Shown here piece by piece: positions 7,973 through 59,400 of a DNA stretch of 64,000 nucleotides. Positions within the stretch are counted from its first letter, which is position 1. Every line of letters begins with the position of its first letter. Under the pieces are notes generated by a model. That model worked only from the letters and a program-made list of their open reading frames with translations, did not search any database and was not told the origin of the DNA. A program made the translations under genes and the position numbers. Location: IMG/VR virus record IMGVR_UViG_3300028666_000022, positions 186,001 through 250,000 of that record. One strand, given 5' to 3'.

Positions 7973-8001
7973 AATTATATTTTTTAATAGTAAAAGGGTT
8001 T

Positions 8002-8136: not shown

Positions 8137-8147
8137 AAAATTATTTA

Positions 8148-8348
8148 TTAAAATAAATTAAAATAATCACTACACAATCCTCCAAATACCATTGCAAATA
8201 AATAACCAACAGGTATTGTACAAAAGAAAAACATTAAATACCAAGGATCGAAATGTAAATAATGCACCCCAATATAAGGAAATAACATTATTATAAATGT
8301 AATAATTATAATAATTAAGAAACATGAATAACCCACAATTTTTTTCAT
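8148..8348 (-). CDS. Small membrane protein (2 predicted TM segments)
   Basis: 66 aa, two hydrophobic stretches. Confidence 0.55.
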   Translation of the reverse strand: MKKIVGYSCFLIIIIITFIIMLFPYIGVHYLHFDPWYLMFFFCTIPVGYLFAMVFGGLCSDYFNLF

Positions 8349-8362
8349 AATTTTTCTTTTAA

Positions 8363-8827
8363 TTAAACATTTTCAATATTATATTCTTCAGGTATTAATA
8401 ATTCACATTTATTTGTATTATATATTCCAAACGTACTATCAATTTCTCTAAATTTATCTTCAATTTTATTTAATATTAATCCAGACAACATAAAAAGTTT
8501 AGCATTATATTCATCATAAGGAAAATCAATAATAATTTTTTTAAATTTTATTTCTTCAACAACAGGAATTAATTCATTTTTACTATATTCTAATAATTTA
8601 TATAATAAAAAATTTTTCTTAATATTATGATCAAATGAAACTAATTCTAAATTTATTTCATTATTATTCGTATTTTTTGAAATAAAAATAAAATATTTAA
8701 ATTTTTCTGAATCATATGTGCCATTAATCTTAATTTGTTCTTCTTTTTGTTTCTCATATTGTTTTCTTAAATCATCAAAACCTAAACGAAAAACAGTATT
8801 TATTTTTTCTTTTTTCATATTAATCAT
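8363..8827 (-). CDS. Hypothetical protein
   Basis: 154-aa ORF overlapping the exonuclease stop. Confidence 0.55.
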   Translation of the reverse strand: MINMKKEKINTVFRLGFDDLRKQYEKQKEEQIKINGTYDSEKFKYFIFISKNTNNNEINLELVSFDHNIKKNFLLYKLLEYSKNELIPVVEEIKFKKIIIDFPYDEYNAKLFMLSGLILNKIEDKFREIDSTFGIYNTNKCELLIPEEYNIENV

Positions 8828-22511: not shown

Positions 22512-23222
22512 TCATTTAATTCCATGTTTATTAAAAATATTTTCAATTATTTTAATATCTTCTTGATTTAACTCAGCTTCACCATATATTGATTTATGCC
22601 AATCTTTAAGTAATTTTCCATGTTCCATCACATGTCCGAGAGCAACTACAAAATTATTTACTGGAAGTAATATTGCTGCATTATCATATTTTGCAGTATC
22701 TCTAGTTTCCCATTGCCAAGGATTTATATTCTGAACTAAATATTTTTTAAAATATGATGTTTTCCATATTGAATATTGTAATGATAGTCGATAATCAGCA
22801 TTTTGATTTATTTCAGAAATATTATAATTACCAAAATTTTTAATACAACTACTTCCACCATAGAAATCTGAAGGTGTTTTTGTTAACCACATTCTTCCAA
22901 AATTTGGAATTTCTTTAATGGTTTTAATTATTTGATCTAAAAAATCATTATTAAATTCAGTAGTAACAACACAATCATCATTACCATAAATGAAATATTC
23001 ATCATTGAAATCATTAAAAAATTTAATTAAATCATTACTAAAATTCTGTGCTCCGGTATCTTCACCTAATGATATGAATTTCCAATTACCTAAATCAAAA
23101 TCTAATGTTTTATATCCTAAAACTGTAATATCTAATTCAGAACCACCAAATTTATCTAATGAATATTTATTAGCTTCTAAAATATTACGATATTTATCAC
23201 ATGTGGGAATTATTATTTTCAT
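22512..23222 (-). CDS. Putative glycosyltransferase (GT-A-like)
   Basis: IIIPTCDKY, YFIYGNDD, SLQYSIWK, NPWQWE; glycan-cluster context. Confidence 0.55.
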   Translation of the reverse strand: MKIIIPTCDKYRNILEANKYSLDKFGGSELDITVLGYKTLDFDLGNWKFISLGEDTGAQNFSNDLIKFFNDFNDEYFIYGNDDCVVTTEFNNDFLDQIIKTIKEIPNFGRMWLTKTPSDFYGGSSCIKNFGNYNISEINQNADYRLSLQYSIWKTSYFKKYLVQNINPWQWETRDTAKYDNAAILLPVNNFVVALGHVMEHGKLLKDWHKSIYGEAELNQEDIKIIENIFNKHGIK

Positions 23223-23233
23223 AAAAAATATAA

Positions 23234-24211
23234 TTATTTCTTATCTTTAAGAATATTCATCCAATTATTCACCATATCTTTCATTAATTCTTCCACTGTT
23301 TGTTCTGGTTTCCAATTAAGAATAGTTTTAGCTTTAGTTGCATCACCTCGCAAATATGGTAATTCTTCTGAACGTAAATATATTGGATTTTGTACAACAT
23401 AATCTTTATAGTCCATATCTAAATATTTAAATACCATATCACATATTTCTCTAATTGATGTTGCTATTCCTGTTGCAATTACAAAATCATCAGGAACTTC
23501 ATGATTTACTATTTTCCACATAGCTTTAACATAATCAACACTAGAACCAAAATCCCTATATGTATCTAAATTACCTAATTCAATATTTTTTCTTAATCCC
23601 AATTTAATTTCTACCGCTTGCTTACATATTTTTTGTTCAACAAAATTTGAACCCCTTCTTACACCAGTGTGGTTAAAGAGAATTCCCACACATGCATGTA
23701 AATTATATGCTCTTCTAAAATGACGAACTAAATTAATTGAAGCAACTTTACTTATTCCATAAGGACTTGTTGGATTAAAAGGGGTGGTTTCTCTTTGATA
23801 TAAATCTTCATCTACATTTAAACCAAATGATTCTGAGCTTCCAGCAAAATAATATTTAGCATCAGGACAAATTAATTTATATCCCTCTAAAATATTTTGA
23901 TTTCCCTTAAAATTAACATCCATTACATAGGTTGGCACGTCAAAACTGACTCGTACATGGCTCATAGCCGCTAAATTAAAAATATAATCAGGATTTGAGT
24001 TTTTTAAAAATCTATTAACTGATACTGAATCAGTAACATCGCCATATTCACAATGAATTAAATTTTTAATGTGTTCTAATCTATATTGTTGATTTTCGGC
24101 AACACTATGTCTTCTGACCATTCCATATATGTTATGACCCATCGATAATAAGTAATCAGTTAGGTTACTGCCGTCCATGCCTGAAATTCCAAACAATGCA
24201 ATATTACTCAT
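23234..24211 (-). CDS. gmd: GDP-mannose 4,6-dehydratase
   Basis: GISGMDGS, NLAAMSHVRVSF, GSSESFG, ETTPFNPTSPYGISK, GILFNH, LGNLDTYRDFG. Confidence 0.92.
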   Translation of the reverse strand: MSNIALFGISGMDGSNLTDYLLSMGHNIYGMVRRHSVAENQQYRLEHIKNLIHCEYGDVTDSVSVNRFLKNSNPDYIFNLAAMSHVRVSFDVPTYVMDVNFKGNQNILEGYKLICPDAKYYFAGSSESFGLNVDEDLYQRETTPFNPTSPYGISKVASINLVRHFRRAYNLHACVGILFNHTGVRRGSNFVEQKICKQAVEIKLGLRKNIELGNLDTYRDFGSSVDYVKAMWKIVNHEVPDDFVIATGIATSIREICDMVFKYLDMDYKDYVVQNPIYLRSEELPYLRGDATKAKTILNWKPEQTVEELMKDMVNNWMNILKDKK

Positions 24212-24238
24212 GTTTATATTATTTATAATTTAATTTTA

Positions 24239-25096
24239 TTAAGATGCTATATCTAAAGTATGTTTTTTACCACATCTTTTACATTTAAAAATTTCTAATT
24301 CAAATTTTTCTAAATTACGATGAATATCATCTATTAATTTTGTTTCAATAGGTTCATCATTTAACCAATCAATATCAGATTCTAAATTTAATAATTCTGG
24401 ACAAAAACACCAATCTGGATTATTCTTAATTTCTTCTTCTAATTGATATTTTTTTCTTATTTCTTTATTTAATTTCTTTTTGTTACTCATTTTATTATTT
24501 TTAAATATATCCATATTAGTTAAATCAGGCCAATCAGTAACAACCCATTGTTTAGGTGGAGTATTAATAGCATTATCTAATCTTTCTAATCCCAATTGTG
24601 CTGCTTCCGGTGTTAAATAATAGTGATAACCAATAGTATCAATATTTTGTTCTCTCCAAGGTATATCAGGTAATCTACCATCATATGAATTTTTTTTCAA
24701 TTCTAATGCAGCTTCTTTATTATCTGTTAAAATTATTCCAGCACGTCCAATTTTCAAATGTTTTCTATATTGGAAAGACAGTGACATGAAAGTATTTGGA
24801 ATATAACTATTTCTTTTCCAAAGAACTGCAGCATCAATTACTTTTTTAGTTAAATAATAATAATCAACCCAATTTTCATCTTTCCATTCTAAATTAATAT
24901 TTAATTTATGTGCTAAAAAGGGAATTGATAAATATGTTCTTTTAGGAACTGTTATTTTGGTTGCCTTTGTATGTCTTAAACATAATTCAATACCATGTGT
25001 ACATGAATCAACAGCAATTGCATATGGAGATCCAAAAAACTCACATATTTTATCTTCAAATAATTTTACTGTTTCAAAATTTATATTATTATTCAT
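24239..25096 (-). CDS. Short DegT/DnrJ/EryC1/StrS PLP aminotransferase with an unrelated C-terminal CxC/CxxC extension
   Basis: FEDKICEFFG, AVDSCTHGI, IDAAV, SFQYRKHLKIGRAG (PLP Lys), GYHYYL; second ATG at 24490 starts the extension. Confidence 0.8.
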   Translation of the reverse strand: MNNNINFETVKLFEDKICEFFGSPYAIAVDSCTHGIELCLRHTKATKITVPKRTYLSIPFLAHKLNINLEWKDENWVDYYYLTKKVIDAAVLWKRNSYIPNTFMSLSFQYRKHLKIGRAGIILTDNKEAALELKKNSYDGRLPDIPWREQNIDTIGYHYYLTPEAAQLGLERLDNAINTPPKQWVVTDWPDLTNMDIFKNNKMSNKKKLNKEIRKKYQLEEEIKNNPDWCFCPELLNLESDIDWLNDEPIETKLIDDIHRNLEKFELEIFKCKRCGKKHTLDIAS

Positions 25097-25112
25097 TAGG
25101 TTTTTAATGATT

Positions 25113-25292
25113 TTAATTATTTAAATCTCTATCTAATTCATTACTTATTTCAAACAATTGTTGATTATCACTCACCCAAATTTCCCGATAAATTTCATCA
25201 TTCAATTTTAAAATTAAATCACAATATAACTCAATACTTATTTGTTCACAATATAATATTTGTTCCTTATTTTCAACTAAATAATGAATCAT
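25113..25292 (-). CDS. Small acidic hypothetical protein (59 aa)
   Basis: Hand translation MIHYLVENKEQILYCEQ...QLFEISNELDRDLNN; below the ORF-track cutoff. Confidence 0.4.
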   Translation of the reverse strand: MIHYLVENKEQILYCEQISIELYCDLILKLNDEIYREIWVSDNQQLFEISNELDRDLNN

Positions 25293-25294
25293 TT

Positions 25295-25492
25295 TTAATC
25301 TTTATTATTATCTTTTTTCTGAAAATCACCATCTGCATCACAATGTGACGGAGGATATCCAAGCTTTTTCAAACTATAGTGACGTAAAATTCTTTGTATT
25401 ATATTATAAATACCAGTAAAGATACCACCAATTAAAAACATAAATCCTAACCAAATCCAAAAATCACTAAAAATAAATTTTAATTCTTCCAT
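25295..25492 (-). CDS. Small membrane protein
   Basis: One TM segment followed by GYPPSHCDADGDF. Confidence 0.6.
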   Translation of the reverse strand: MEELKFIFSDFWIWLGFMFLIGGIFTGIYNIIQRILRHYSLKKLGYPPSHCDADGDFQKKDNNKD

Positions 25493-25509
25493 AATAATAT
25501 ATTTTATAA

Positions 25510-25647
25510 TTAAATTTCAACTAATATTTCATCATTTTCTAATATAATTATATTTTTAATACGATTTTCTTCGCCAGTTTCATTATTTATTTCAGGTAAT
25601 GAATTTATTTTCTTTTTTAAATTTTTAATTGAAATACTATTTTCCAT
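25510..25647 (-). CDS. Small hypothetical protein (45 aa)
   Basis: Hand translation MENSISIKNLKKKINSLPE...EILVEI; fills the operon gap. Confidence 0.4.
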   Translation of the reverse strand: MENSISIKNLKKKINSLPEINNETGEENRIKNIIILENDEILVEI

Positions 25648-25659
25648 AATTATAATTTT

Positions 25660-26085
25660 TTATAAATATTCTTTTTTAAAAAATAATCTCTTATACCAAG
25701 ATAACTTAGAAAATTTATCTAATATTTTATTGGTATTATTTTTAATTATTTCATCTATTTCTTCTTGTTTTAATTTTTCGTGTTCTTCTTTTAAATTAGA
25801 TATTAAATCAATACTTTCTTCTAAAATTAAACACATTGTCCCATTATCAATAGCAATAGGAATTCGTTTTCCTTTTAATTTATTAAGATTATTCCACGAT
25901 ACAATATCACATTTAATATCATTAACTAAATCTTTACCGTAACTTATTTTGTGAGCTAATAATATTTTTTCACGATCATAATTTTTAACTCCATCAATCA
26001 TGAGTTTTGTATGTCCACATCCCCTTGTATTCAGATAATAGTCATATAATATTATAAGTTTTTCTAATGTTTTAGTTTCTTCCAT
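25660..26085 (-). CDS. Hypothetical protein
   Basis: 141 aa, TRGCGHT...PIAIDN. Confidence 0.55.
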   Translation of the reverse strand: MEETKTLEKLIILYDYYLNTRGCGHTKLMIDGVKNYDREKILLAHKISYGKDLVNDIKCDIVSWNNLNKLKGKRIPIAIDNGTMCLILEESIDLISNLKEEHEKLKQEEIDEIIKNNTNKILDKFSKLSWYKRLFFKKEYL

Positions 26086-26097
26086 GATAATTTATCA

Positions 26098-27821
26098 TTA
26101 AATAATATTATGTTCTCTTAAAATTTTCTCAATATTATCATAATCAAAATACGCAATTCTAATTAATTTAATATTTTTATCTTTAGCAAATTTATTTTTT
26201 ATTTCATCATTAATTTGTAGTTCTTTAAATTTTTCTTCTCCACCGAAATGTTTAATAATTTTATAATGTTGTATACCGTCAAATTCAATTAGAATGTTTT
26301 GTTCTGGTAAATAAAAATCAAATGGTAAAGATTTTTTATTTCTGCAATTTTCAAATTTTTTTTGATAAATAAAATTTATATTATTTTCTTTTAAAATTTC
26401 AGAAATTTTATTTTCACCCTTTGATTCGTTACATTTAGGACAACAATTATCACGATTTATAAAATTAATGTAACTTACATACCAAATATGATTATCTTTA
26501 TTACATCTTAAATGAATTTTTGTTTGATTATTTTTATATAAAAATTTTTCTATTAATTCATAATTTTTCTTTTTGCATTTATTTAGAACATTTTTTTCTG
26601 CTTCTTCTTGTGTTATTTTTAAAACATTAACACATTTAGAACATCCATGATCTTGACTCACAAAACTACTATAAATTGTTTTCCATATATAATTATCTTT
26701 TTTACATTTTAAATAAATAGTTGTTTCATTATTCACATATATAAAATTTTCAACTAATTCATAGTTTTTTTCTTTACATTTTTTCAAAACTTTTTCTTCA
26801 GCTTCTTGTTGTGTTATTTTTATACTATTTCCACATTTAGGACAACCTTGATTTTGATTAATAAAATTATCATATTTAACATTCCACACATAATTATCTT
26901 TATTACATTTTAAATGAATTTTTGTTTGGTTATTTTCATATGAAAAGTTTTCAACTAAGGTATAGTTTTTTTCTATACATTTTTTTCTGCTTCTCCTTGT
27001 GTTATTTTTGAAACATTACCACATTTAGGACATCCACTTTTATTATGAATAAAACTATCGTATGTTGGTGTCCATTTATACTCATCAATAGTACATTTTA
27101 AATGAATTTTTGTTTTTGTACCTTTATAAATAAATTTATCAAATAAAACATATTTTTTTTCTTTACATTTTTCTAAAACTCTTTCTTCGGCTTCTTGTTG
27201 TGTTATTTTTAAATTTCCATTACATTTAGGACAACCTTGATTTTTATTTATAAATTTATTATATCTTACAAACCATTCATGTTTATCTTTATTACATTTT
27301 AAATGAATTTTTGTTTTATGGTTTTTATAAATAAAATTTTCAACTAATATATAGTTTTTTTCTTTGCACTTTATTAAAACTTTTTTCTCTGCTTCTTCTT
27401 GTGTTATTAATGGTCTATTACCACATTTAGGACATCCACTTTTACTATGAATAAAACTATCATAAATTATATTCCATATATAATTATCTTTATTACATTT
27501 TAAGTGAATTATAGTATCGTTATTAACATATATAAAATTTTTAATTAATTCATAATTTTTTTCTTTACATTTCTCTAAAACTTTTTGTTCGGCTTCTTGT
27601 TGTGTTAATCTTAAGTTTCCACTACATTTAGGGCATCCTTGATTCTTACTAAGAAAATTATTATAAGTTACATACCAATCATACTTATCTTTGTTACATT
27701 TTAAATGAATTTTTGTTTTATTATTTTTATATGAAAAATTTTCAACAAGAATATAGTTTCTTTTCTCACACTTTTTAAAAACATTTTCTTCTGCTTCTTG
27801 TTGTGTTAATTTCTTTAACAT
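26098..27821 (-). pseudogene. Frameshift-split endonuclease: seven ~67-aa Zn-ribbon repeats plus C-terminal PD-(D/E)xK/Vsr-like nuclease
   Basis: ORFs 26973..27821 (4 CPKC repeats) and 26098..26889 (3 repeats + SKGENKI...LPFDFYLP...LIEFDGIQH) join in the -1 frame at the A7 run 26980-26986. Confidence 0.75.
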
Positions 27822-27855
27822 TAAATAATTTTAAACATAAATTTATTTTTAAATT

Positions 27856-28407
27856 TTAATAACAATATCCCAATTCCTTAGCCCCTTTTAATATTAATTC
27901 TTTATCTCTTTCACCTATTTTTCTTGCTGGACTTCCACCATAAATACACCACTGTTCAGTACTTTTTTTCAATAATGAATTTGCTGCTAAAACACTGCCC
28001 TCTGCCATTTCAACATAAGGTAATACAACAGAATTAACTCCCACTAATGAAAATCTTCTCATGATTATTTTATTACCAATAAGATTTCTATATTTTAATG
28101 GTACTATTGGATTTATTAATCCTTTTGTAAAATCATCACTTATAACCACAATTTTTGACCCCGATCCAATGTTTGTGAAGTCTTCCATAATTAATTCACC
28201 TGTAGGGCCACCTAGCACAGATACTCCATTTCCAATGTGTATATATGATCCTAATTCAGCAGAAACAGAAAAATAAACATATCCATCAATCGAAACATGA
28301 TTTTCAATTTCAACTAATTCTGGTTGTGTTATTTCACACCACTGATGGATTCTAACATCTTCACCAATTTTCTTAAAAAGATTATCATATCTATCGGTTC
28401 TTACCAT
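27856..28407 (-). CDS. Hexapeptide-repeat (LbH) acyltransferase
   Basis: IGEDVRI, HIGNGVSV, NIGSGSKI, VGVNSVVLP, YGGSPARKI. Confidence 0.85.
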   Translation of the reverse strand: MVRTDRYDNLFKKIGEDVRIHQWCEITQPELVEIENHVSIDGYVYFSVSAELGSYIHIGNGVSVLGGPTGELIMEDFTNIGSGSKIVVISDDFTKGLINPIVPLKYRNLIGNKIIMRRFSLVGVNSVVLPYVEMAEGSVLAANSLLKKSTEQWCIYGGSPARKIGERDKELILKGAKELGYCY

Positions 28408-29052
28408 TTAGATTCCTCCATCGATTTTTAAATTACTTCCACAAACATAATCATTTTCAATTAAAAAAACAATGGTTTTAAATAATTCTTCAACAGTACA
28501 AAATCTTTTTAAACCTATTTTATTTTTCGCCATTTCAATAAATTTCTCATCTACTTTTTCACCCATTCCATATTCTGTATACCCCAATTGAATTGTATTA
28601 CATGTTATTCCATATTTAGCATTTTCTTTATTTGCTGTACTTATTAATCTATCTAAAAATGCTTTTGAAGCACAATATATTGAATTCTTTGGAATGTTTT
28701 GTTCAGAAAATACTGACGATATTGCAATTATTTTACCACTTTTCTTTTCAATCATTCTAGGTAAACAAGCAGCTAATATATTAATATTTCCCATGATATT
28801 AACATTTAACATATCAATAATTGATTGATAATTATCTTCATTAATATCATTTAAAAATACATCAAATTTTTTACCAGATAAATTCAAAACAATATCAACA
28901 TCGTTGACTTCAAAAAAATGTTGTACTTGTTTTAAATTAGTAACGTCAACAATTTTACTACTTATTGCAAGTACTTCATAATTTTCCTTCAATAATGGAA
29001 TTAATTTAGAACCTAAACCACCTGTTGCACCAAAAACAGCAATTGTTTTCAT
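28408..29052 (-). CDS. Short-chain dehydrogenase/reductase (FabG-like)
   Basis: GATGGLG, NVNIMG, AISS, YCASK, GITCNTIQLG, IDGG. Confidence 0.85.
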   Translation of the reverse strand: MKTIAVFGATGGLGSKLIPLLKENYEVLAISSKIVDVTNLKQVQHFFEVNDVDIVLNLSGKKFDVFLNDINEDNYQSIIDMLNVNIMGNINILAACLPRMIEKKSGKIIAISSVFSEQNIPKNSIYCASKAFLDRLISTANKENAKYGITCNTIQLGYTEYGMGEKVDEKFIEMAKNKIGLKRFCTVEELFKTIVFLIENDYVCGSNLKIDGGI

Positions 29053-29058
29053 AAAATT

Positions 29059-29871
29059 TTATATATTATTTAATATAATATTCCATGTTGGTGTAATATT
29101 CAGAAAAGAACTAACATTATTTTCAATAAATTCATCATCAATATATTTAGTATGATTAAATATTACCATTTTCTCATCAACATATAATTTATTATTATAT
29201 TTTTTGGCATTAAATTGGATATACCATGCACCACATTGGTATACATTATCAACAATTTTTATTTTTAATTTTTCATGTGTTATTTTTGAGATCATCCATT
29301 GAATCCCAGCATGATGTGAATTAATTTTTACAAATTCATCCCACTCTAAAATTATATTATCTCTTAGTTTAAGAAATGTTTTTTTATTTCCAATCAAAAT
29401 CGATCCAGTAAATTCATTAAAAATTTTTAAATATTCAAATTGTTCAGAATTAATAAAATTTAAATTTTTTGTAACGTCATATAATGTCATAGGTGGATTA
29501 GCAGAATAAACAGAAATAATTTGATCTTCTTCTGGTATTAAATTATTTAATTCAATATCTGTCATTTCTCGTTGCATTATTGTATCTGCATCAATCTGAA
29601 TTATTACGTCATCATCAGAACAATTTAAATAATCAATAAATTCACCACCTTGTGGACAAACAAAATCACATCTATTTTTTGGATAATCAGAACGATACGT
29701 ATAAATTCTTTTTCTTTCCATTAAATAATATTCACCAATATAATCATTAGGTAAAAAATCAATAAATCCAACAACAAATCTGTCTTTCCAATATTTTTTT
29801 ACTGAATCAAATAATGGTTTTGATTTTTCATAATAACTACTTGTTACTTGCGTTGTTAATATAAATTTCAT
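29059..29871 (-). CDS. Putative glycosyltransferase-like protein
   Basis: IIQIDAD (DxD), FTGSILIG; cluster context. Confidence 0.5.
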   Translation of the reverse strand: MKFILTTQVTSSYYEKSKPLFDSVKKYWKDRFVVGFIDFLPNDYIGEYYLMERKRIYTYRSDYPKNRCDFVCPQGGEFIDYLNCSDDDVIIQIDADTIMQREMTDIELNNLIPEEDQIISVYSANPPMTLYDVTKNLNFINSEQFEYLKIFNEFTGSILIGNKKTFLKLRDNIILEWDEFVKINSHHAGIQWMISKITHEKLKIKIVDNVYQCGAWYIQFNAKKYNNKLYVDEKMVIFNHTKYIDDEFIENNVSSFLNITPTWNIILNNI

Positions 29872-29922
29872 TTTTTATATATAATATTTCTAATTAACCT
29901 AATGATCATATTAATAATATTT

Positions 29923-30618
29923 TTATCTAGGCTTTGGATATTTAGTTTCTCCCACAACATCTAAAATATCTACATTATTCCAATCAAAATTATTAACATC
30001 AGCTATTTTTTTACCTAAATATTCACTATGACAATATAATCCACCAACTGGTCTATTTCTCAAATATTCATCAGCTAATAATGAAAATCTTCCAACAATT
30101 GGATTTGACATACCTGCCTCAATACATTCAAAACCAAGTGCTTTTGAAAATAAACACTTTAATGCCATATCACTAAATTGAAAAAAATGCCAAGGTCTTT
30201 CATGTGAAGAAAAAGAAAAATGTGTTTCAATCATTACAATTCCCCCAATTTTTAATAATTTAGAAATTTCTATAGCAACAATCCAAGGCATTGCAAAATG
30301 TTCAAAACACGCACTACTGAATATTATGTCAAATTTTTCATCTTCATTAAAATATGAAGAAAGTTTATGTGCATCACCAACAACATCAACATTTTTTCCT
30401 GCATAAAAATCAAATCCAACATATTCTGCATTAGAAAATTTATTTCTATTTTTAGCGTTAGTTACTTCACGACTCCCCACTTCTAATATTCTCATTCCAC
30501 TTTTATTCCCAATAGAATATAAATAATTTTGCCATTTAGAATGATTAATTGTTTCTGATAGAGGAACATCTGGTGCTAGAAATTGTCTATCATAAAATAC
30601 GTTATTTTGATTTTCCAT
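29923..30618 (-). CDS. Class I SAM-dependent methyltransferase
   Basis: ILEVGSR, YVGFD, VDVVGDAH, FDIIFSSACFEH, LLKIGG. Confidence 0.85.
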   Translation of the reverse strand: MENQNNVFYDRQFLAPDVPLSETINHSKWQNYLYSIGNKSGMRILEVGSREVTNAKNRNKFSNAEYVGFDFYAGKNVDVVGDAHKLSSYFNEDEKFDIIFSSACFEHFAMPWIVAIEISKLLKIGGIVMIETHFSFSSHERPWHFFQFSDMALKCLFSKALGFECIEAGMSNPIVGRFSLLADEYLRNRPVGGLYCHSEYLGKKIADVNNFDWNNVDILDVVGETKYPKPR

Positions 30619-30649
30619 TGTTAGTTTATTTTAAAATTTAAAATTATTT

Positions 30650-31027
30650 TTATTTGATTATATTAAGTTTTGAAGTTATGTTTTTATGTTTCTTTCTATG
30701 TTTAAGAACACGATATGTTGGTACTTCAAACTCTTTTCTTTTGAAGACTCTTTTCACCATTTTTTTACATAATTCTTTTATTTCTTTATTATTGAGTTCA
30801 TATTTTGATTTTAATATTGAATATATTTTATGATAACTAACATGTATTTCATTATTATCTAAATCATATGTTAAATACCATTCTCCTTTTCTGTAAGATT
30901 CAATTATCCCATCATTTATATTATCTTCTAAAATTATTTCTTTAAATTCTGATTGTTTAAATGATTTCAATAAAAATTTACTTGCTTCCTGAATATTTAT
31001 TTCGTTTTTCATATTATGAATAATCAT
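30650..31027 (-). CDS. Hypothetical protein
   Basis: 125 aa, overlaps the MT-A70 stop. Confidence 0.5.
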   Translation of the reverse strand: MIIHNMKNEINIQEASKFLLKSFKQSEFKEIILEDNINDGIIESYRKGEWYLTYDLDNNEIHVSYHKIYSILKSKYELNNKEIKELCKKMVKRVFKRKEFEVPTYRVLKHRKKHKNITSKLNIIK

Positions 31028-31599
31028 AATTTTATACTATTTTCCACTTCATTTCCGAAAACGTCCCAACCTTCTGTTTGTTGCCTTGCAAACAATTCAA
31101 CACGAGGTAAATCACCCATTAATTCAATTATTCTTTCTCTAAAAATATCTGGCTTCTTAGAATGTTTTTCATTTAAAGCAAATATTGTTTCTTCGTTAAA
31201 TTCTTCTTCAGCTAACTGAACAGATCTTATACCATGATTAATTACTTTAGGTTTTCCTTTAGTTGCAATTAAACAAAATTCTGATAATTGCCTTGAATAA
31301 AACCCCATTCCAAAACCAAGTTTATCATTTTTGGTTGTTTTAACCCAATTGAATCCTGACATTGTTTTTACCTTAAAACCCCAAGATTTAACAACTCTAA
31401 GTGCTTCTTCTGGTTGTGATGCCACCCACCACATAAATAAAATACAATCATCTGCAGCTATTTCACTTACTGGTAAATTACAAATTTCATCAACAGTCAT
31501 GGTTTTATATTGTGCTTCAGAACCACTTTTCATACTACCACCAGTATTTTTATTATTAAAACTCCAAGGACAATCAGCGTATATGATAGAATATTTCAT
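31024..31599 (-). CDS. MT-A70 family adenine methyltransferase
   Basis: YSIIYADCPW (DPPW variant), LFMWW, WGF, WVK, GMGFY, HSKKP, RVELFAR, GWDVFGNE. Confidence 0.88.
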   Translation of the reverse strand: MKYSIIYADCPWSFNNKNTGGSMKSGSEAQYKTMTVDEICNLPVSEIAADDCILFMWWVASQPEEALRVVKSWGFKVKTMSGFNWVKTTKNDKLGFGMGFYSRQLSEFCLIATKGKPKVINHGIRSVQLAEEEFNEETIFALNEKHSKKPDIFRERIIELMGDLPRVELFARQQTEGWDVFGNEVENSIKL

Positions 31600-31613
31600 G
31601 ATAATATTTTTAA

Positions 31614-31877
31614 TTAAGATATTTCTGATTGAATAACTTGACCCACATTATATTCATCTAATGTATATTTCAAAAAAAATGTGGAATTATCTAATGGATT
31701 AACAATTTTCCAATCTTCTAAATATCTATTCCACATTTTTTTATAATATAAATTACTTGATTTATTAATTCGATTTTTAAAATATTTTAAAAGATATTCG
31801 TGTGCTTTGATTTTATCTTCTGCCATCACAAAATATTCTTCACCATGATCGTTTGGATTAAAATGATATTGTTTCAT
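31614..31877 (-). CDS. Hypothetical protein
   Basis: 87 aa; TAATTTTG box at 31900-31907 upstream. Confidence 0.5.
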   Translation of the reverse strand: MKQYHFNPNDHGEEYFVMAEDKIKAHEYLLKYFKNRINKSSNLYYKKMWNRYLEDWKIVNPLDNSTFFLKYTLDEYNVGQVIQSEIS

Positions 31878-31933
31878 AATTTTATTATTAATGTTCTCAC
31901 AAAATTAAATAAATTATAATTAATATCCTAGTT

Positions 31934-32869
31934 TTATTTAAAATATTTTATAATTGATACTCCCCATGTCCAACCTGAACCTACTGCTGGCATAATTAGA
32001 ATATCACCATTTTTTATTTTATTTTCTCGATATAATCCATCTAATGCCATTGGTATTGAAGCACCTGCAGAATTACCATATTTAATCATATTTAAAACTA
32101 CTTTTTCGATTGGTAGTCGAAGTATTTCTGCAGTTTTAATAAGAACATTAATACTTGGTTGATGTGGAATTAGCCAAGAAATGTCTTCAACACTTAAGTT
32201 ATTTTTATTTAAAGAATCTAATATTGTATATGGTAATGTTTTTGTAGCAAATTCAAAAACTGCTTTTCCATTCATTTGAAATGTTTCACCGTGATGACAA
32301 GTAAAAATATCTTTTCCTATGCCATCACCATAAATATCAGTACTTATCCAACCACCTTCTGTTTCAGAAATAATTATACTTCCAGAACCATCGCCAAAAA
32401 ATACGCAATTCCGATCACTCCAATCAGTAATTTTAGAATATGTTTCTGAAGCAACCAACAATATATTTTTATATTGTTTTGTTTGAATTAAATTAGTTGC
32501 TAATTGCATTCCATACACAAAACCAGAACAAACTGCATTAATATCAAATGCTGGACAAGTTATATCTAATTTTGACATTAAAATACATGCTGTTGAAGGA
32601 GATATTCTTTCAGGACTTGAGGTAGCAAATATTATTAAATCGATTTGATTTTTATTTAAACCACTATCTTCAATTGCATTTAATGCTGCTCTATATGCTA
32701 AATCTGAATTACTTTCTTCTAAGACAACATGTCTTTCTTCAATACCTAATTTATTTTTAGTCCACTCAGGATTTGTATTTTTATTTATTAAATAAACTTC
32801 TTCGTTATTTAACGTTTTTAATGGAACATATGATCCAATGCCTTTTATTCCAACATTGTTTATTTTCAT
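31934..32869 (-). CDS. fabH: 3-oxoacyl-ACP synthase III (KAS III)
   Basis: GIGSYVP, GIEER, AFDINAVCSGF (Cys), FGDGSG, IPHQPS (His), YGNSAGASIP (Asn), GSGWTWG. Confidence 0.92.
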   Translation of the reverse strand: MKINNVGIKGIGSYVPLKTLNNEEVYLINKNTNPEWTKNKLGIEERHVVLEESNSDLAYRAALNAIEDSGLNKNQIDLIIFATSSPERISPSTACILMSKLDITCPAFDINAVCSGFVYGMQLATNLIQTKQYKNILLVASETYSKITDWSDRNCVFFGDGSGSIIISETEGGWISTDIYGDGIGKDIFTCHHGETFQMNGKAVFEFATKTLPYTILDSLNKNNLSVEDISWLIPHQPSINVLIKTAEILRLPIEKVVLNMIKYGNSAGASIPMALDGLYRENKIKNGDILIMPAVGSGWTWGVSIIKYFK

Positions 32870-33703
32870 TTATTTTCTGGAATTAAAATATTTTATTATT
32901 ATATTTCTATAAAATTCATTGGCAATAAATTTTTCATCTTTTGAAATAAATTCAAACTTAAAAAAATTATTAGAACATGTTGAAAATGCAATTGGAATTG
33001 GTGATTTAAGATCAACAAAATCTATTGGGTATTCATCACCAATGTTTTCTAAACCAAGAATATTTAATATTTGATTAGTCATATGAATAAAAACATATGA
33101 TGTAGGATGACTTGCATATAGAAATAATCTTTTCTTGCTTATATTTTCTTTTATATAATCATGTACTTTTATATCGGTATATTTATCTTTTTCTTTTAAA
33201 ATCTTCATTGTTTTATCATGTCTTTCATCATAATTAAAATCAATTTGATTATTATCATATTTCAATAAAATTTCATTCAATGATAAACCAGATTTTATTA
33301 AATCATCAATAATTTCGATATTTTTAGTAACACTATTATACCCATCCCTATTGCACCATTCATCAGTAACATCTCCATTAAGTGCAGGTACTAAAGGCCA
33401 TAAACTAAAATTATATACATAAGGTATTGAGATTGTTATACATGTTGATTTCAATAATGACTTCAAATAATTTGTTGAATTTTTACCATATCTATCGTCT
33501 AATGGTTGATAAATAAAAACATCTGTATCTCTTAATGAAGTATAATATTTGTCAATTAATATTTCATCATTATGAATCATTTGATAGTTACGAACAACGT
33601 CAGTAATATTATATTTATCTCTAAATTCTTGACTTTCATTAAGAAATTTAGCAATTGCTCCACCTTGGCAAGTAGCAAATATAAAAACATTTAATTTATT
33701 CAT
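32870..33703 (-). CDS. WcbI-family polysaccharide acetyltransferase-like protein
   Basis: FATCQG, DVFIYQP, LFLYASHPT match the WcbI NCQ...HP pattern. Confidence 0.7.
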   Translation of the reverse strand: MNKLNVFIFATCQGGAIAKFLNESQEFRDKYNITDVVRNYQMIHNDEILIDKYYTSLRDTDVFIYQPLDDRYGKNSTNYLKSLLKSTCITISIPYVYNFSLWPLVPALNGDVTDEWCNRDGYNSVTKNIEIIDDLIKSGLSLNEILLKYDNNQIDFNYDERHDKTMKILKEKDKYTDIKVHDYIKENISKKRLFLYASHPTSYVFIHMTNQILNILGLENIGDEYPIDFVDLKSPIPIAFSTCSNNFFKFEFISKDEKFIANEFYRNIIIKYFNSRK

Positions 33704-34124
33704 TTAAAAACACTTTATCTAGCTTCTGTCCTTGATATTTCCCCGTTTTCATTTCCAGTACTTTCGTTTTATCTTCTAATATAGTATAGGTATGTCCACC
33801 TCTTAAAGTAAAGCTACAATCACCTTCTTCAAGTATTGATTCAGCAATTATATTATCATCAATATCATAGAAAGTACATTTAACCTTTCCTCTTAAAACA
33901 ACCCATGATTCTTGAGCAATTCTATCATTATCGGTTACTTCTCTTATTATGTGTTTATGTGGCCTAAATGTTTTACCTTTATCCATTTTAAGTGCTGCAC
34001 ATTGAATAAAATTATCTGGTTCAATTATTTCAAACCTAAAATCATCCATTTTATCAAAATCATCAAATCTATATATCACATGTAATAAAAGATTAGGATC
34101 TACTTTTGAGAATATTTTTTCCAT
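33696..34124 (-). CDS. Cupin-fold protein (WbuC/sugar isomerase-like)
   Basis: FRPHKH...QESWVVLRG...GGHTY...EMKTG. Confidence 0.7.
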   Translation of the reverse strand: MEKIFSKVDPNLLLHVIYRFDDFDKMDDFRFEIIEPDNFIQCAALKMDKGKTFRPHKHIIREVTDNDRIAQESWVVLRGKVKCTFYDIDDNIIAESILEEGDCSFTLRGGHTYTILEDKTKVLEMKTGKYQGQKLDKVFLNE

Positions 34125-34132: not shown

Positions 34133-35626
34133 TTATATTAAAAAATCTTTATATATTTCATTATATTTTTGAAGATTAGATGTAGTGCGTTTCACAATAA
34201 AACCATATTCTGGCGAAATATAAAATGTATCCCAAACACTGCCCCAATCTAAATAAGTATTTTTATTATCTGTTTTAAAATAATCAATAATCACATTAGT
34301 TGCCATGCTTGCACTAAATAAATAATAATTATCATTACCTAATTTATTTATGTTTTCAATTGCATTAATAATTTCTTGTTTAGCTAAATAACAATTTATT
34401 GTTGGTATACTAATGTGGGTAAAATTAAAAAATTTGCTTAATTTCTCTAAATATTGTGGTCCAATCAATACTAATTTTTTTGTTTTTAATACGTCTAATA
34501 ATTTTAGGTATTTTTCTGGACTTTGTTCATGGGTAATCCTAATAAAATCATAGTTTAAATATGATAATTGTGGATTTTTATTTTTTAGATCATTTAAAAT
34601 ATTTTTTACGTGAGGGAGTTGAGCATACCAATAATCAAAAGATTCTAAAACATAATTTTCATCATGAACATAATTTAATAATGCATTTTTTAATTCAATC
34701 GACATTTCTGGAAAATATACATGACCATCACAATTAGCGTTATTTGGAGTTTCACCAATTATTGCAATTAATTCACCATCATTATATCTTGAATATTTAA
34801 AATGTTCATTATTTTTAATTTTATTAAAATAATAATCAAAATCTTTTGTATAAAACATATTATTTATTATTTGTTTTATTTTCATATTTGGTTCAGGAAT
34901 TCTCTCACAAAGACCAACATTTGTTGTTATATTTATTTGTATTAATTTTTCTTCTGCTAATATTCTATAAAAATTTTTTGCATCATTTTTTTGAATTTCA
35001 TCTATATTTGAAACAGTTGCACGAGTTTTACTACTGTGATGAATAATCGGAGAACTATAAACTAAAGCAACATTATAACCAGCATTTACTGTTTTTGCAA
35101 AAACATAATCATCACCACCAAAAATTATTAATTCTTTTGGTATTTCTGGCATTATGTTTCTTCTTATTGTAAAATCCCAACCCTGATAATATACTGGATC
35201 TAATATCTTATATTCTAACGTGCTCTTAGTTTCAATATAATTAGGATTATTTGTTACATGTATAACAAAACCAACTTGTGTTTCTAAATTAAAAACATTA
35301 ATAGTATCATCAATAAATTTATTAGATAATTCAACATCGTTATTTAAAAAACACAAAAATTCACATAAACAAATATTTTTAAAATTATTCCAAATATGAT
35401 TAAGTGGTACATTCTCAGAATTTCTAAGTACGATAATTTTATTGCTTTCACAATAATTTAGAAAATCTTGAGTACCTTCTTCACTAGAATTTTGATCATA
35501 TAAATATATTTCAAAATTTTTATTTGTTTGATTTAATAAATCATATATACACTTCTTTGTTAATTGAAGTTGATTTAAATTTACTACAACAACTCCAATT
35601 TTATTTTTTTGAATTTCACTATTCAT
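34133..35626 (-). CDS. Two-domain glycosyltransferase (GT2 plus a second, possibly GT-D-like, domain)
   Basis: YDQNSSE, FLNNDV, FGGDD; second half KYSRYNDGE...SASMAT...LDWGSVWD. Confidence 0.75.
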   Translation of the reverse strand: MNSEIQKNKIGVVVVNLNQLQLTKKCIYDLLNQTNKNFEIYLYDQNSSEEGTQDFLNYCESNKIIVLRNSENVPLNHIWNNFKNICLCEFLCFLNNDVELSNKFIDDTINVFNLETQVGFVIHVTNNPNYIETKSTLEYKILDPVYYQGWDFTIRRNIMPEIPKELIIFGGDDYVFAKTVNAGYNVALVYSSPIIHHSSKTRATVSNIDEIQKNDAKNFYRILAEEKLIQINITTNVGLCERIPEPNMKIKQIINNMFYTKDFDYYFNKIKNNEHFKYSRYNDGELIAIIGETPNNANCDGHVYFPEMSIELKNALLNYVHDENYVLESFDYWYAQLPHVKNILNDLKNKNPQLSYLNYDFIRITHEQSPEKYLKLLDVLKTKKLVLIGPQYLEKLSKFFNFTHISIPTINCYLAKQEIINAIENINKLGNDNYYLFSASMATNVIIDYFKTDNKNTYLDWGSVWDTFYISPEYGFIVKRTTSNLQKYNEIYKDFLI

Positions 35627-36458
35627 GTTTAGCTAAATTTAAAATATAATTATATTCAAATAATTCTTTTAATTGTGTTTTATAATCAGGAACAATAATA
35701 TTAATGTTATTACGTATTGTAATTAATGAACGATCACATTTTATTGGTGTCCTGAGTGGAATAACATTTACATTTAATTTATATGTTTCAGAAACTAATT
35801 TAACTAAATCATATTTATTTATTGAATTTTCAGTAAAAACATGTTTTACTCCTTTCCAAAACATATTTTCATTAATTATGTCTTCACATATTTTTACAAA
35901 TTCTAAACAAGTAATGCCATTCCAAATATGATTAGTATACCCGTTTACTGTCTTATTTTTATTTGATTTAACAAATTCAATAAAAGACATTTTATTTTTT
36001 AATTCTTCACCAATTATTGAAGTTCGAATAACAGTTGCATTTGATGGTTCGCCCAATGCTTTTGTTTTTCCATAAACATCTATTGCATTTGTAGAATCTT
36101 CTTCTGAATATTTACCACGTAAACCATCAAAACAACAATCTGAACTAGGTTGTAGCATATTAACCTTAAATAATTCACAAATATTAGCTAATTTTCGTGG
36201 AAAAACAGAATTAATATTAATAAAATCTAAATCATCAATTCCATTTCTTTGTTTTATTATTCCAATACAATTAATTACCACATCTCCAACATTAATATCT
36301 TTATTTTTTAATACTAACATAATATCACTAGAATTTGTTAAAGATAAATCATTAAAATCTTTTCTGTTTATATCAATAACATCAAAATTTTTTAATTTAA
36401 AATATGTACTAACATATCTTCCTAACATTCCGGTACTGCCAAATACAAAAATTTTCAT
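35619..36458 (-). CDS. RmlD-like NDP-4-keto-6-deoxysugar reductase
   Basis: GSTGMLG, INCIG, SSDCCFDG, YGKTK, IRTSIIG. Confidence 0.85.
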   Translation of the reverse strand: MKIFVFGSTGMLGRYVSTYFKLKNFDVIDINRKDFNDLSLTNSSDIMLVLKNKDINVGDVVINCIGIIKQRNGIDDLDFININSVFPRKLANICELFKVNMLQPSSDCCFDGLRGKYSEEDSTNAIDVYGKTKALGEPSNATVIRTSIIGEELKNKMSFIEFVKSNKNKTVNGYTNHIWNGITCLEFVKICEDIINENMFWKGVKHVFTENSINKYDLVKLVSETYKLNVNVIPLRTPIKCDRSLITIRNNINIIVPDYKTQLKELFEYNYILNLAKHE

Positions 36459-36464: not shown

Positions 36465-37460
36465 TCATTTTTTTAAAAAACCACCATTCATTAGTAATTT
36501 ATAAAGATAATTCTCATCTTTAATATTGTCTGCTGATGAAAATTCTATAAAATTAACTTTTTTATTTTTTTCTATATGTGAATAATCTTTATTTATTTTT
36601 ATTGAAGGTAAAATTATAAAATAATTTTCATTAAAAATATAAGATTTTTGAGATTCATGTTCTGATATTAATACTTCATGTATTTTTTCACCTTCTCTTA
36701 TACCAACTTCCTCAATAATAGTATCTTTATTACCATAATAATCAACCAATGCTTTACCCAAATCTTTAATATAAAAACTAGGCATATTCATAACAAACGT
36801 TTCTCCACCAATACTATTTTCAACTGCTTGAAATAATAATTCAATTGCTTCTGAAAGTGTTAAGAAAAATCTTGTCATTATGTTACTAGTTATAGTAATT
36901 TTATTATTCGTTTTGATTTGATCAATAAAATATGGCACAACACTACCATTAGATCCTAAAACATTTCCACCTCTTATACAAACAAAATTAGTATCAGTTG
37001 TTAAATTATTTGCTTGAATTGTTAATTTTTCACCAACTGCTTTAGTTAATCCATATAAATTATTTGGACTGACCGATTTATCTGTTGATACATCAATAAA
37101 ATATTTTATTTTATATTTAATTGCTGAATTAATTAAATTAATTGTACCATTTATATTTGTTTTAATTGCTTCTTGGGGTAAATTTTCACAAATAGGAACA
37201 TGTTTAAGTGCAGCTAAATGAAAAACATAATCAATATTGTTATTACTAAACAATCTATCTACTGCTTCAGCATCTCTAATATCACCAATAACATATTCAA
37301 TTATTTTATTATTAAATTTTCTTTGCATATTTACCTGCGCAAATTCACCTCTTGAAAAAATTATTATTTTCTTAGGATTTTTTAATAATAATTGTTTTGT
37401 TAATTCGTTTCCCCATGAACCAGAACCACCATCAATTAATATTGTTTTATTTTTAAACAT
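36465..37460 (-). CDS. UDP-GlcNAc 4,6-dehydratase (FnlA/CapE/PseB family)
   Basis: GGSGSWG, IIFSRGE, IGDIRD, HLAALKHVP, STDKS, YGLTK, RGGNVLGSNGSV, MTRFFL, GEKIHE. Confidence 0.88.
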   Translation of the reverse strand: MFKNKTILIDGGSGSWGNELTKQLLLKNPKKIIIFSRGEFAQVNMQRKFNNKIIEYVIGDIRDAEAVDRLFSNNNIDYVFHLAALKHVPICENLPQEAIKTNINGTINLINSAIKYKIKYFIDVSTDKSVSPNNLYGLTKAVGEKLTIQANNLTTDTNFVCIRGGNVLGSNGSVVPYFIDQIKTNNKITITSNIMTRFFLTLSEAIELLFQAVENSIGGETFVMNMPSFYIKDLGKALVDYYGNKDTIIEEVGIREGEKIHEVLISEHESQKSYIFNENYFIILPSIKINKDYSHIEKNKKVNFIEFSSADNIKDENYLYKLLMNGGFLKK

Positions 37461-37463: not shown

Positions 37464-38234
37464 TTATATTTTAATAAAATTCGGATATTTTATTACCCAT
37501 TCTTTTAATTCTTTATGATTTACTTCTTCTAAAGAAACGAATCTTTTTTTAAAGATTTCATCATTTCTATTAAATAGATCAATACCACTTTCCAAACATT
37601 TTATAATATGTTCTTCATTATTTATTTCAACATTATTTGTTTGTATTTCAGAATATGATTCTAATTTTAATTTAATTCTATCTTTATCACCAAGAAAACT
37701 ATAATGCCAACCACCATTATTAATTATCTTAATATCTCTACCACTAAATAAACGAGTATCTTGTGGTGATTTTACGTATTTTTTCTTGATTACTACTGTA
37801 CCAAACCATTCTTGATTTTGTATGCAATTCACATAATAATAAAACAATTTTTGTTTTAATTTAAAAATATCATAATTATTATTAATTCCTTCTAATATTG
37901 CATCTGGATTAGGAATTTCATCAACATCTGAAATAATAATATAATCATTGTCATTTGCTGAACTTAAACCTTGAATAATTAGATTTCTATTATAGAACTC
38001 ATTTTCCCATGCATCACTATATGGTAATTTATCTACACTAATATAAATTATCTTATCTGAATATTTTTCAAATAAATTTTTATTCTTTTCATAATACATT
38101 TCTTTTTCATTTCCAGTAAATGTTGTTCCTGCTTCAACTAATACAAAATAATCAACCACATTATATAATGTCATCAACCTAAGTTCTAATAACTCAAGTT
38201 CATTAAAAAATATAAAACAGTCAAAAATTTTCAT
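37464..38234 (-). CDS. Glycosyltransferase family 17 (GlcNAc-transferase-like)
   Basis: IFDCFIFFNELELLELR, VDYFVLVEA, TFTG, ISDVDEIP, GGWHYSF. Confidence 0.85.
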   Translation of the reverse strand: MKIFDCFIFFNELELLELRLMTLYNVVDYFVLVEAGTTFTGNEKEMYYEKNKNLFEKYSDKIIYISVDKLPYSDAWENEFYNRNLIIQGLSSANDNDYIIISDVDEIPNPDAILEGINNNYDIFKLKQKLFYYYVNCIQNQEWFGTVVIKKKYVKSPQDTRLFSGRDIKIINNGGWHYSFLGDKDRIKLKLESYSEIQTNNVEINNEEHIIKCLESGIDLFNRNDEIFKKRFVSLEEVNHKELKEWVIKYPNFIKI

Positions 38235-59397: not shown

Positions 59398-59400
59398 ATA

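Follow-up and report, generated by a model that had tools for sequence, protein, structure and literature searches.

A FabH-containing glycan cassette in a jumbo, distantly T4-like phage and its proposed role in amino sugar N-acylation

The viosamine island of Pseudomonas syringae pv. tabaci, which is composed of vioA, vioS (a β-ketoacyl-acyl carrier protein synthase III, KAS III), vioB (a left-handed β-helix acyltransferase, LbH), vioR (a reductase), vioM, vioT, and the acyl carrier protein (ACP) gene acp, yields N-(3-hydroxybutanoyl)-2-O-methyl-viosamine on flagellin; the orfA–orfN flagellin glycosylation island of Pseudomonas aeruginosa PAK is a homologue of it (PMC3927599). Here we describe a similar set of genes in a 64,000-nucleotide stretch of phage DNA (the window), which corresponds to bases 186001–250000 of the 339,898-bp IMG/VR record IMGVR_UViG_3300028666_000022, a record with direct terminal repeats. 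The set includes a FabH-like KAS III, a short-chain dehydrogenase/reductase (SDR), an LbH, a GDP-mannose 4,6-dehydratase (Gmd), a shortened DegT-family protein (mini-DegT), and a small cupin. Such sets recur in many uncultured phages. On balance, the cassette probably makes a short hydroxy-acyl group for the N-acylation of an amino sugar derived from host GDP-mannose, without a carrier protein of its own.

The viosamine island is the closest described system. It shares with the phage locus co-located genes for an aminotransferase, a KAS III, an LbH, and a 3-oxoacyl reductase, along with a methyltransferase, but its dedicated ACP has no counterpart in the phage. The island starts from dTDP-glucose and has a 372-amino acid aminotransferase and its own 69-amino acid ACP, whereas the phage-borne cassette would start from GDP-mannose and has an aminotransferase-like core of 200 residues, a cupin, and no ACP. 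The closest solved relative of the phage LbH is AntD, which N-acylates a nucleotide-linked 4-amino-4,6-dideoxyhexose with a β-hydroxyacyl-coenzyme A (CoA). Unlike the donor proposed here, that of AntD, 3-hydroxy-3-methylbutyryl-CoA, comes from leucine-type metabolism rather than from FabH and SDR, and its sugar is dTDP-linked.

The cellular FabHs nearest to that of the phage lie in bacterial nonulosonic-acid loci, with an SDR downstream and often an AntD-like LbH. These loci also have no ACP gene by the tests used, but differ in having a legionaminic- or pseudaminic-type sugar and a full-length DegT. In one such locus (L042), from an Owenweeksia metagenome-assembled genome (MAG), a 4,6-dehydratase, a 2-epimerase, a full-length DegT, an LbH, FabH, an SDR, NeuB, and a nucleotidyltransferase form a legionaminic-acid-type set; we found no published function for DegT-LbH-FabH-SDR loci of MAGs. 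The GDP-perosamine pathway (Escherichia coli O157, Vibrio cholerae O1, and Caulobacter) likewise has Gmd, a DegT-family enzyme, and an LbH N-acyltransferase. Its Per is ~370 amino acids, however, and its PerB transfers acetyl, whereas the phage adds a cupin and the FabH/SDR pair; both the configuration of the sugar and the acyl group may differ. Finally, NphT7 of Streptomyces sp. CL190, likened here by its description, is a KAS III that works without ACP on acetyl-CoA and malonyl-CoA, but unlike the phage FabH it feeds the mevalonate pathway (PMC5509993). A search of a limited collection of papers found no description of the phage cassette or of mini-DegT. To our knowledge, mini-DegT is about half the size of any characterized sugar aminotransferase.

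Conserved gene order around FabH

We retrieved 76 IMG/VR loci with FabH relatives and scored their neighbors by tblastn; the counts that follow cover 82 FabH loci of viral or metagenomic origin, one of them the window. The recurrent order, on a single strand, is a 142-amino acid open reading frame (ORF), FabH, SDR, LbH, (one variable gene), mini-DegT, and Gmd. An LbH lies within 2.6 kb of FabH in 63 of the 82 loci and an SDR, immediately downstream, within 1.3 kb in 50; mini-DegT is near FabH in 49 loci and Gmd in 34. At least one of SDR, LbH, and mini-DegT accompanies FabH on the same strand in 75 of the 82, while none has fabD, acpP, plsX, or fabF nearby. The seven loci without a partner consist of three for which the FabH neighbors were not recovered (one contig, L100, ends within FabH), three with distant FabHs (37–38% identity), and the window itself, which is counted here because insertions push its partners past the distance limits.

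The five genes follow this order compactly in L093 and six further loci, for example, and in five more (L008–L012) mini-DegT, LbH, FabH, and SDR all abut. Gmd is directly downstream of mini-DegT in most related loci. A base module lacking FabH, with a 138–142-amino acid ORF, an LbH of ~170 amino acids, mini-DegT, and Gmd, is very common (L001–L007). Such FabH-less modules (cupin, LbH or GNAT, mini-DegT, and Gmd), which are far commoner than those with FabH, show that FabH and SDR are a plug-in at the acyl-donor position, which from this comparison seems freely swappable. In many FabH-less relatives (e.g., L173, positions 4003–8572), a 140-amino acid GNAT replaces the LbH between the cupin and mini-DegT, and the genes flanking this GNAT-type module encode a full-length DegT and a GT11 fucosyltransferase-like protein. 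A 304-amino acid gene between LbH and mini-DegT in L008 was considered as a conserved member and rejected, as it occurs in three loci only and is missing from the window genome.

Judged by its relatives, the window copy is a stretched version of this phage glycan cassette that retains the canonical order. Its unit spans 22512–34124 and runs cupin, FabH, SDR, LbH, mini-DegT, Gmd, and a glycosyltransferase (GT)-A-like gene (Table 1). An initial annotation of the window, made from sequence alone, had reported Gmd, DegT, LbH, SDR, and FabH genes at 23234–32869. All five are indeed there, as intact minus-strand ORFs with Pfam matches, but the unit is wider by the cupin and the GT-A-like gene, and the five genes are not contiguous: three blocks of unrelated ORFs separate them.

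Proposed pathway and its sugar-modifying enzymes

The gene identities, catalytic residues, conserved synteny, phylogeny, and lack of an ACP are direct observations, from which, along with predicted structure and context, we infer the chemical steps of the pathway, its four-carbon chain length, the carrier, the configuration of the sugar, and the glycan target. Gmd would convert host GDP-mannose to GDP-4-keto-6-deoxymannose (step 1), which the cupin may epimerize or isomerize (step 2), and the 200-residue mini-DegT would aminate the sugar intermediate (step 3). In parallel, the FabH-like KAS III would join acetyl-CoA and a malonyl thioester into an acetoacetyl thioester (step 4), and the FabG/PhaB-like SDR would reduce this product to 3-hydroxybutyryl (step 5). 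The AntD-like LbH would then place 3-hydroxybutyryl on the sugar amine, giving GDP-N-(3-hydroxybutanoyl)-amino-6-deoxyhexose (step 6), and glycosyltransferases of the surrounding island would use the acylated sugar, most likely on a phage protein (step 7). The earlier suggestion that the acyl group decorates a glycan gains comparative support from the FabH phylogeny, from the synteny, from the AntD-like character of the LbH, and from an LbH lineage that tracks FabH.

The SDR has FabG (4NBU, 5.7e-20) as its best solved relative and also matches acetoacetyl-CoA reductases, with Ser and YxxxK aligned; its NCBIfam matches include 3-oxoacyl-ACP reductase (9.8e-30) and AcAcCoA_reduct (2.2e-25). Among solved structures, the LbH matches 3VBI–3VBP best, well ahead of any other (E 7e-27; residues 11–172 against AntD 32–193); this set represents AntD, the N-acyltransferase of the anthrose pathway in Bacillus cereus (PMC6031040). 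As a control, the FabH-linked LbH of the bacterial locus L042 matched AntD at 6.8e-27 and the FabH-less LbH of L004 at 1.1e-14; FabH-linked LbHs score ~40 bits above a FabH-less one. In work by Kubiak and Holden from 2012, AntD is said to move 3-hydroxy-3-methylbutyryl from CoA to dTDP-4-amino-4,6-dideoxyglucose. The phage LbH may similarly prefer a β-hydroxyacyl-CoA donor, to which the higher AntD scores of FabH-linked LbHs and the tree below point indirectly.

A tree of 76 LbHs was built in which the label FabH-linked requires a FabH within 3 kb. Eighteen of the 19 sequences labeled FabH-less form one clade (Shimodaira-Hasegawa-like approximate likelihood ratio test, SH-aLRT, 90). The nineteenth is the LbH of the window, which received the label because its FabH lies past the 3-kb limit; it groups with LbHs of FabH+SDR cassettes (L093, L140, and L008). 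This topology fits one switch in acyl preference coupled to the gain of FabH, a single event and not statistical proof.

It is also conceivable, though unlikely, that the LbH only N-acetylates, as do enzymes of the PerB/VioB type, and that the acyl group made by FabH and SDR serves an O-acyl decoration (perhaps through the WcbI-like protein), another sugar of the island, or a non-glycan product. The retention of an LbH or a GNAT in the same slot by FabH-less relatives points to acetylation as the ancestral job. FabH-less LbHs, moreover, are AntD-like too, and a WcbI-like gene abuts FabH in the window. This reading does not account for the switch of LbH lineage with the presence of FabH, nor for the much greater closeness to AntD of the FabH-linked LbHs of both phages and bacteria. 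In addition, FabH, SDR, and LbH abut one another in most cassettes, whereas the WcbI-like gene has no homologue across the related loci and is an insertion specific to the window phage.

In twelve related viral loci (e.g., L104 and L150–L154), FabH is followed directly by LbH, with no SDR. From this variant one would expect an N-(3-oxobutanoyl) group in place of the 3-hydroxybutanoyl one, unless another enzyme performs the reduction.

The gene annotated initially as a DegT-type aminotransferase is a member of the DegT family and retains the pyridoxal phosphate (PLP) Asp and Lys, but it is truncated. Mini-DegT has ~195 N-terminal DegT-like residues and a tail of ~85 residues, and so is not a full-length (~370-amino acid) C4 aminotransferase of the Per/RfbE type. 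The short form is no chance truncation: at least 7,460 relatives came up in a word-based search, those listed being 194–250 amino acids long (mostly ~200) and up to 88% identical, and in IMG/VR, at least 592 viral stretches carry one. The relatives either stop at ~200 amino acids or bear unrelated tails. Asp88 and Ser107-Phe108...Lys112 are invariant across two subfamilies, with Asp88 and Lys112 corresponding to the Asp that binds PLP and the Lys that forms the Schiff base in ArnB. The AlphaFold (AF2) model has a predicted local distance difference test (pLDDT) score of 86–96 over residues 11–130, and its top Foldseek matches are ArnB, GDP-perosamine synthase, and ColD. From this model and these residues, we propose that mini-DegT is a PLP sugar aminotransferase.

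It is unlikely that mini-DegT is instead dehydratase-like, regulatory, or an inactive remnant, in which case no amino sugar would form and the LbH would acylate a hydroxyl or some other substrate. ColD, one of the structural matches, is a dehydratase, but it has His at the Lys position that both mini-DegT subfamilies keep. The shortness of the DegT-like part, the weak matches to solved aminotransferases (E 0.026), and the full-length DegT near some of the relatives speak for this reading. On the other hand, mini-DegT always stands beside Gmd and an N-acyltransferase and is the sole DegT-family gene in the genome. Strong selection is also suggested by the thousands of members of the family, in which none of the 120 matches listed falls below 70% identity to the window copy. 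The tail of the window copy (24239–24500) is Cys-rich, with one Cys-x-Cys and one CxxC, and is confined to the window phage.

Gmd matches the NCBIfam gmd model (E 3.2e-88, 296 bits) below its equivalog cut-off of 415 but far above other dehydratase models. Since the phage genome has no sugar-1-phosphate nucleotidyltransferase, the GDP-mannose must be supplied by the host. The cupin shares 60–62% identity with the ORF that immediately precedes LbH-miniDegT-Gmd in L001 and L004. It was found in 42 related loci, mostly abutting FabH, and in most loci travels with mini-DegT and Gmd. Its only family match is NCBIfam cupin_WbuC (E 4.4e-9, 36.3 bits, just under the cut-off of 42). The AF2 model has a cupin fold (pLDDT 65) that matches generic cupins and the cupin domain of the C3-epimerase CapF (Z 11.3); these fold matches fit a ketoisomerase, an epimerase, and a generic cupin alike. 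Sequence and profile matches of the cupin to solved structures were to designed repeat proteins only and were treated as spurious. The cupin may act as an epimerase or isomerase on the 4-keto-6-deoxy sugar, before amination. GDP-perosamine, the sugar nucleotide that a complete Gmd/DegT pair would suggest, is not established here because the aminotransferase is truncated and the WbuC/CapF-like cupin could change the configuration; perosamine is one possibility for the sugar and not a conclusion.

FabH phylogeny and the acyl carrier

FabH has both KAS III domains (PF08545, 1e-24; PF08541, 5.5e-27). It passes the cut-off of NCBIfam NF006829 (303 bits against 249) and falls just below that of TIGR00747 (285.9 against 292.1). 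It matches Aquifex FabH at 2.8e-66 and is 34% identical to E. coli FabH. The intact Cys-His-Asn triad noticed in the initial annotation is borne out, as C114, H236, and N266 align with C112, H244, and N274 of E. coli and are invariant among 16 relatives. In a search of 185,579 species genomes, the closest cellular relatives were at most 50% identical, and many of these near relatives have an SDR directly downstream, some with an LbH adjoining.

For phylogeny, E. coli fabH and its operon were added as a reference, and cellular rows were labeled by their neighbor genes. A quick tree of 142 rows places the window FabH in a clade made up of 55 viral rows and one MAG row (SH-aLRT 98), and the adjoining clade consists of cellular FabHs with SDR or LbH neighbors. 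In a more careful tree of 63 rows (LG+C20+F+G4), a branch supported at 99/95 and present in 100% of bootstrap trees has the seven fab-operon FabHs on one side. These seven and a clade from marine group II archaea are cut off from the remainder at 100/98, and the window FabH lies inside a 100/100 clade of six viral rows. The fab-operon FabHs thus split off from the viral clade and from bacterial FabHs of glycan loci, and the phage enzyme does not group with housekeeping FabHs, the grouping that the initial annotation had named as telling against its idea.

Two observations concern other branches of these trees. FabH-like genes of marine group II archaea (Poseidoniales MAGs, L061–L091) form the tight clade found with the bacterial fab-operon FabHs at 100/98, and none has an SDR, LbH, or fab neighbor in the neighbor screen. 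A FabH from a contig binned as a Gammaproteobacteria MAG (L046) lies inside the viral clade in the quick tree and on a long unplaced branch in the careful one; the contig may be a mis-binned phage fragment.

Viromics surveys routinely tally viral fabH as a fatty-acid auxiliary metabolic gene. That the phage fabH boosts host fatty-acid initiation, with its place in a glycan island being incidental, is nevertheless highly improbable, as the initial annotation had suspected. In its favor are the KAS III model passed above and the intact triad. However, the genome holds no other fab gene, none of the 82 viral loci has fab neighbors and 75 have glycan partners, the viral clade stands apart from fab-operon FabHs, and the ACP-docking positions are largely non-basic (see below). 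With fabH in a sugar-decorating cassette in this phage and at no fewer than 75 further viral loci, the lipid tallies would miscount this clade.

The absence of an ACP gene, noted initially for the window, extends to the whole 339,898-bp record, in which neither the PF00550 (PP-binding) profile nor tblastn with E. coli AcpP, FabD, FabF, and PlsX found a match. Four further large FabH-bearing phage records (one complete, 360 kb) likewise have no PP-binding protein. The 87-amino acid ORF that follows FabH is not a credible ACP candidate, as it has no family and no DSL-type motif. In a motif scan of FabH loci, which divergent ACPs could escape, a canonical acpP occurred beside two fab-operon FabHs only.

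Residues R36, R40, R151, K214, R249, K256, and K257 of E. coli FabH form what we take to be its ACP-docking patch (Zhang et al. 2001). The window FabH has K36, E40, R151, E214, N249, E256, and I257 at these positions, of which two of the seven are basic. In contrast, R36, R151, K/R214, R249, and K/R257 are kept in all seven fab-operon FabHs. Of 61 viral FabHs, 39 have Asn at position 249, and another 18 have Arg or Lys there.

If the proposed pathway holds, CoA thioesters, used as by NphT7, are the somewhat favored carrier, at little better than even chances, and host ACP has a smaller though substantial share. We lean to an all-CoA route because there is no PP-binding protein, the docking patch is eroded, NphT7 provides a precedent, and AntD takes a CoA thioester. 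Chain extension on the sugar, in which the LbH N-acetylates, FabH lengthens the acetyl group to N-acetoacetyl, and reduction by the SDR follows on the nucleotide sugar, is implied by the naming of dTDP-N-acetoacetylviosamine as an intermediate in P. syringae (PMC3927599), but has very little to recommend it because, by thiolase-fold chemistry, a KAS III needs a thioester on its active-site Cys and an amide methyl is no activated donor, and AntD accepts a preformed hydroxyacyl-CoA.

Several points weigh against the proposed pathway to an N-(3-hydroxybutanoyl) amino sugar. All of its steps rest on homology and context, and the described island most like it has an ACP. Compared with known sugar aminotransferases, mini-DegT lacks the whole C-terminal domain and a portion of the large one, and we know of no activity for any aminotransferase form so reduced. 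Likeness to AntD marks a subfamily more than an acyl preference, because FabH-less LbHs share it, if more weakly. The hydroxy group is not universal, since some relatives have no SDR, and the carrier may differ between lineages, given the viral FabHs that keep Arg or Lys at position 249. The cellular sample of the FabH trees was chosen by motif and by similarity to the phage family, and includes only seven fab-operon sequences. Co-expression in the window phage is not assured, because three insertions break up the cassette.

We suggest, as a tentative and less probable extension, that phages make N-(3-hydroxybutanoyl) amino sugars by a self-contained route that needs no carrier protein, with the KAS III as an acetoacetyl-CoA synthase, a working mini-DegT, and a swappable acyl-donor slot. 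If so, the variants of the slot (GNAT; LbH; FabH+LbH; FabH+SDR+LbH) would vary the N-acyl group among acetyl, 3-oxobutanoyl, and 3-hydroxybutanoyl, and N-acyl variation would be a fast-evolving surface trait among related phages. Such a slot suggests how phages diversify glycans that they make themselves, with a bearing on the virion surface and host interaction in uncultured jumbo T4-like phages. The five or six small enzymes would be a compact candidate set for making N-hydroxyacyl GDP-amino sugars without ACP, of use in glycoengineering. The mini-DegT family, with thousands of metagenomic members, would define a minimal sugar aminotransferase if active.

Layout of the window copy and the neighboring island

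Table 1. Genes and insertions of the cassette region, in window coordinates.
Feature	Positions	Strand	Remarks
Cupin, WbuC/CapF-cupin-like, 142 aa	33696-34124	-	First gene of the conserved cassette
WcbI-like protein	32870-33703	-	PF18588 E 3e-23; between cupin and FabH; possible accessory acyl/CoA-binding enzyme
FabH-like KAS III, 311 aa	31934-32869	-	Both KAS III domains
Insertion block 1: 87-aa ORF, MT-A70 DNA methyltransferase, 125-aa ORF	30650-31877	-	Outside the pathway; MT-A70 at 31024-31599 (Pfam E 5.6e-27); 87-aa and 125-aa ORFs without family
S-adenosylmethionine (SAM) methyltransferase, 231 aa	29923-30618	-	Methyltransf_23/31/11; candidate sugar O-/N-methylase, VioM analogue
270-aa ORF	29059-29871	-	Without a family in Pfam or NCBIfam; related loci have no homologue
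FabG/PhaB-like short SDR, 214 aa	28408-29052	-	adh_short_C2 E 6.2e-26
AntD-like LbH, putative N-acyltransferase, 183 aa	27856-28407	-	Hexapep E 2.4e-9
Insertion block 2: two tandem CapR/DUF723 ORFs, 141-aa ORF, 65-aa ORF	25295-27821	-	Outside the pathway; zinc-ribbon endonuclease-like ORFs at 26973-27821 and 26098-26889 (CapR 5.6e-28 and 2.1e-9, DUF723 4e-14)
Mini-DegT, 285 aa	24239-25096	-	PF01041 E 1.5e-12
Gmd, GDP-mannose 4,6-dehydratase, 325 aa	23234-24211	-	PF16363 E 3.6e-91
GT-A-like virus-only protein, 236 aa	22512-23222	-	Candidate transferase for the finished sugar

FabH is separated from the SDR-LbH pair by 2.9 kb, which holds the three ORFs of block 1, the SAM methyltransferase, and the 270-amino acid ORF. 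Block 1 is missing from the compact cassettes of relatives, where SDR abuts FabH. Relatives of the SAM methyltransferase (35–37% identity) occur near FabH cassettes in five loci. The LbH and mini-DegT are 2.8 kb apart, with the two CapR/DUF723 ORFs and two small ORFs between them, while in relatives LbH adjoins mini-DegT or a single GT-like gene stands between. The CapR ORFs are in tandem but in different frames and are built from CapR/treble-clef zinc-ribbon units in repeats. The final region of the second matches DUF723 weakly and has a short FDF...EFDG-type motif recalling endonucleases, a motif without a family match. From these features, the pair looks like a mobile endonuclease gene that split LbH from mini-DegT. 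The 141-amino acid ORF of block 2 (25660–26085) was considered as the counterpart of the 141-amino acid gene upstream of LbH in L001 and was rejected, the sequences being unrelated; the true counterpart is the cupin.

The 236-amino acid protein that follows Gmd belongs to a virus-only family without a Pfam family. Its Atlas model is GT-A-like and resembles Gly_transf_sug/GT8 (TM 0.76). Homologues (43–51% identity) follow Gmd in six related loci.

The island continues upstream of the cassette with a GT2 gene, an FnlA/FnlB/FnlC-like trio, a GT17-like gene, and two large multi-domain glycosyltransferases. The end of the island adjoins 104- and 1088-amino acid genes, and in the close relatives L001 and L008 the islands are likewise bordered by these genes. 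A crude screen for hydrophobic runs in 29 island ORFs found no membrane-spanning segment, and no flippase or polymerase was evident among them. Because of this, a phage protein would be the likely target, and we speculate that the glycan is placed on it by cytoplasmic glycosylation.

The trio consists of a Polysacc_synt_2 dehydratase (36465–37460), an RmlD-like reductase (35619–36458), and a UDP-GlcNAc 2-epimerase (38241–39317), with the GT17-family (GnT-III-like) gene (37464–38234) within it. By homology, the trio points to another pathway besides that of the cassette, with a UDP-2-acetamido-2,6-dideoxy-L-hexose (L-FucNAc or L-RhaNAc, for example) as its product.

The phage record has 25.1% G+C, ~512 ORFs, and three tRNAs, and its major capsid protein is a gp23 of the T4 type (PF07068, E 1.6e-64). 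The closest GenBank phage capsids (32–36% identity) are those of two entries named 'uncultured phage', LR756508 and LR756511 (484–595 kb), followed by those of Microcystis and Flavobacterium myoviruses. On account of its gp23 capsid protein and the nearest relatives of that protein, the source is classed as a jumbo, distantly T4-like phage. Megablast of the cassette region against GenBank phages gave no match. Protein matches of FabH in GenBank phages are to unannotated fragments or to host-like fabH, at no more than 41% identity and in uninformative contexts.

Elsewhere in the window, a 953-amino acid DnaB-like helicase (3959–6820) has LAGLIDADG and Hint matches, which suggests an intein in the replicative helicase. 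All ORFs of at least 100 amino acids in 422–51077 lie on the minus strand, except for one 101-amino acid frame overlapping the end of FabH. A plus-strand block (51389–61116) precedes a minus-strand HNH/homing-endonuclease gene of 510 amino acids (61149–62681; phrog_3339, E 1.1e-90), and the sign of the GC skew flips at ~50–51 kb, at the switch in gene orientation.

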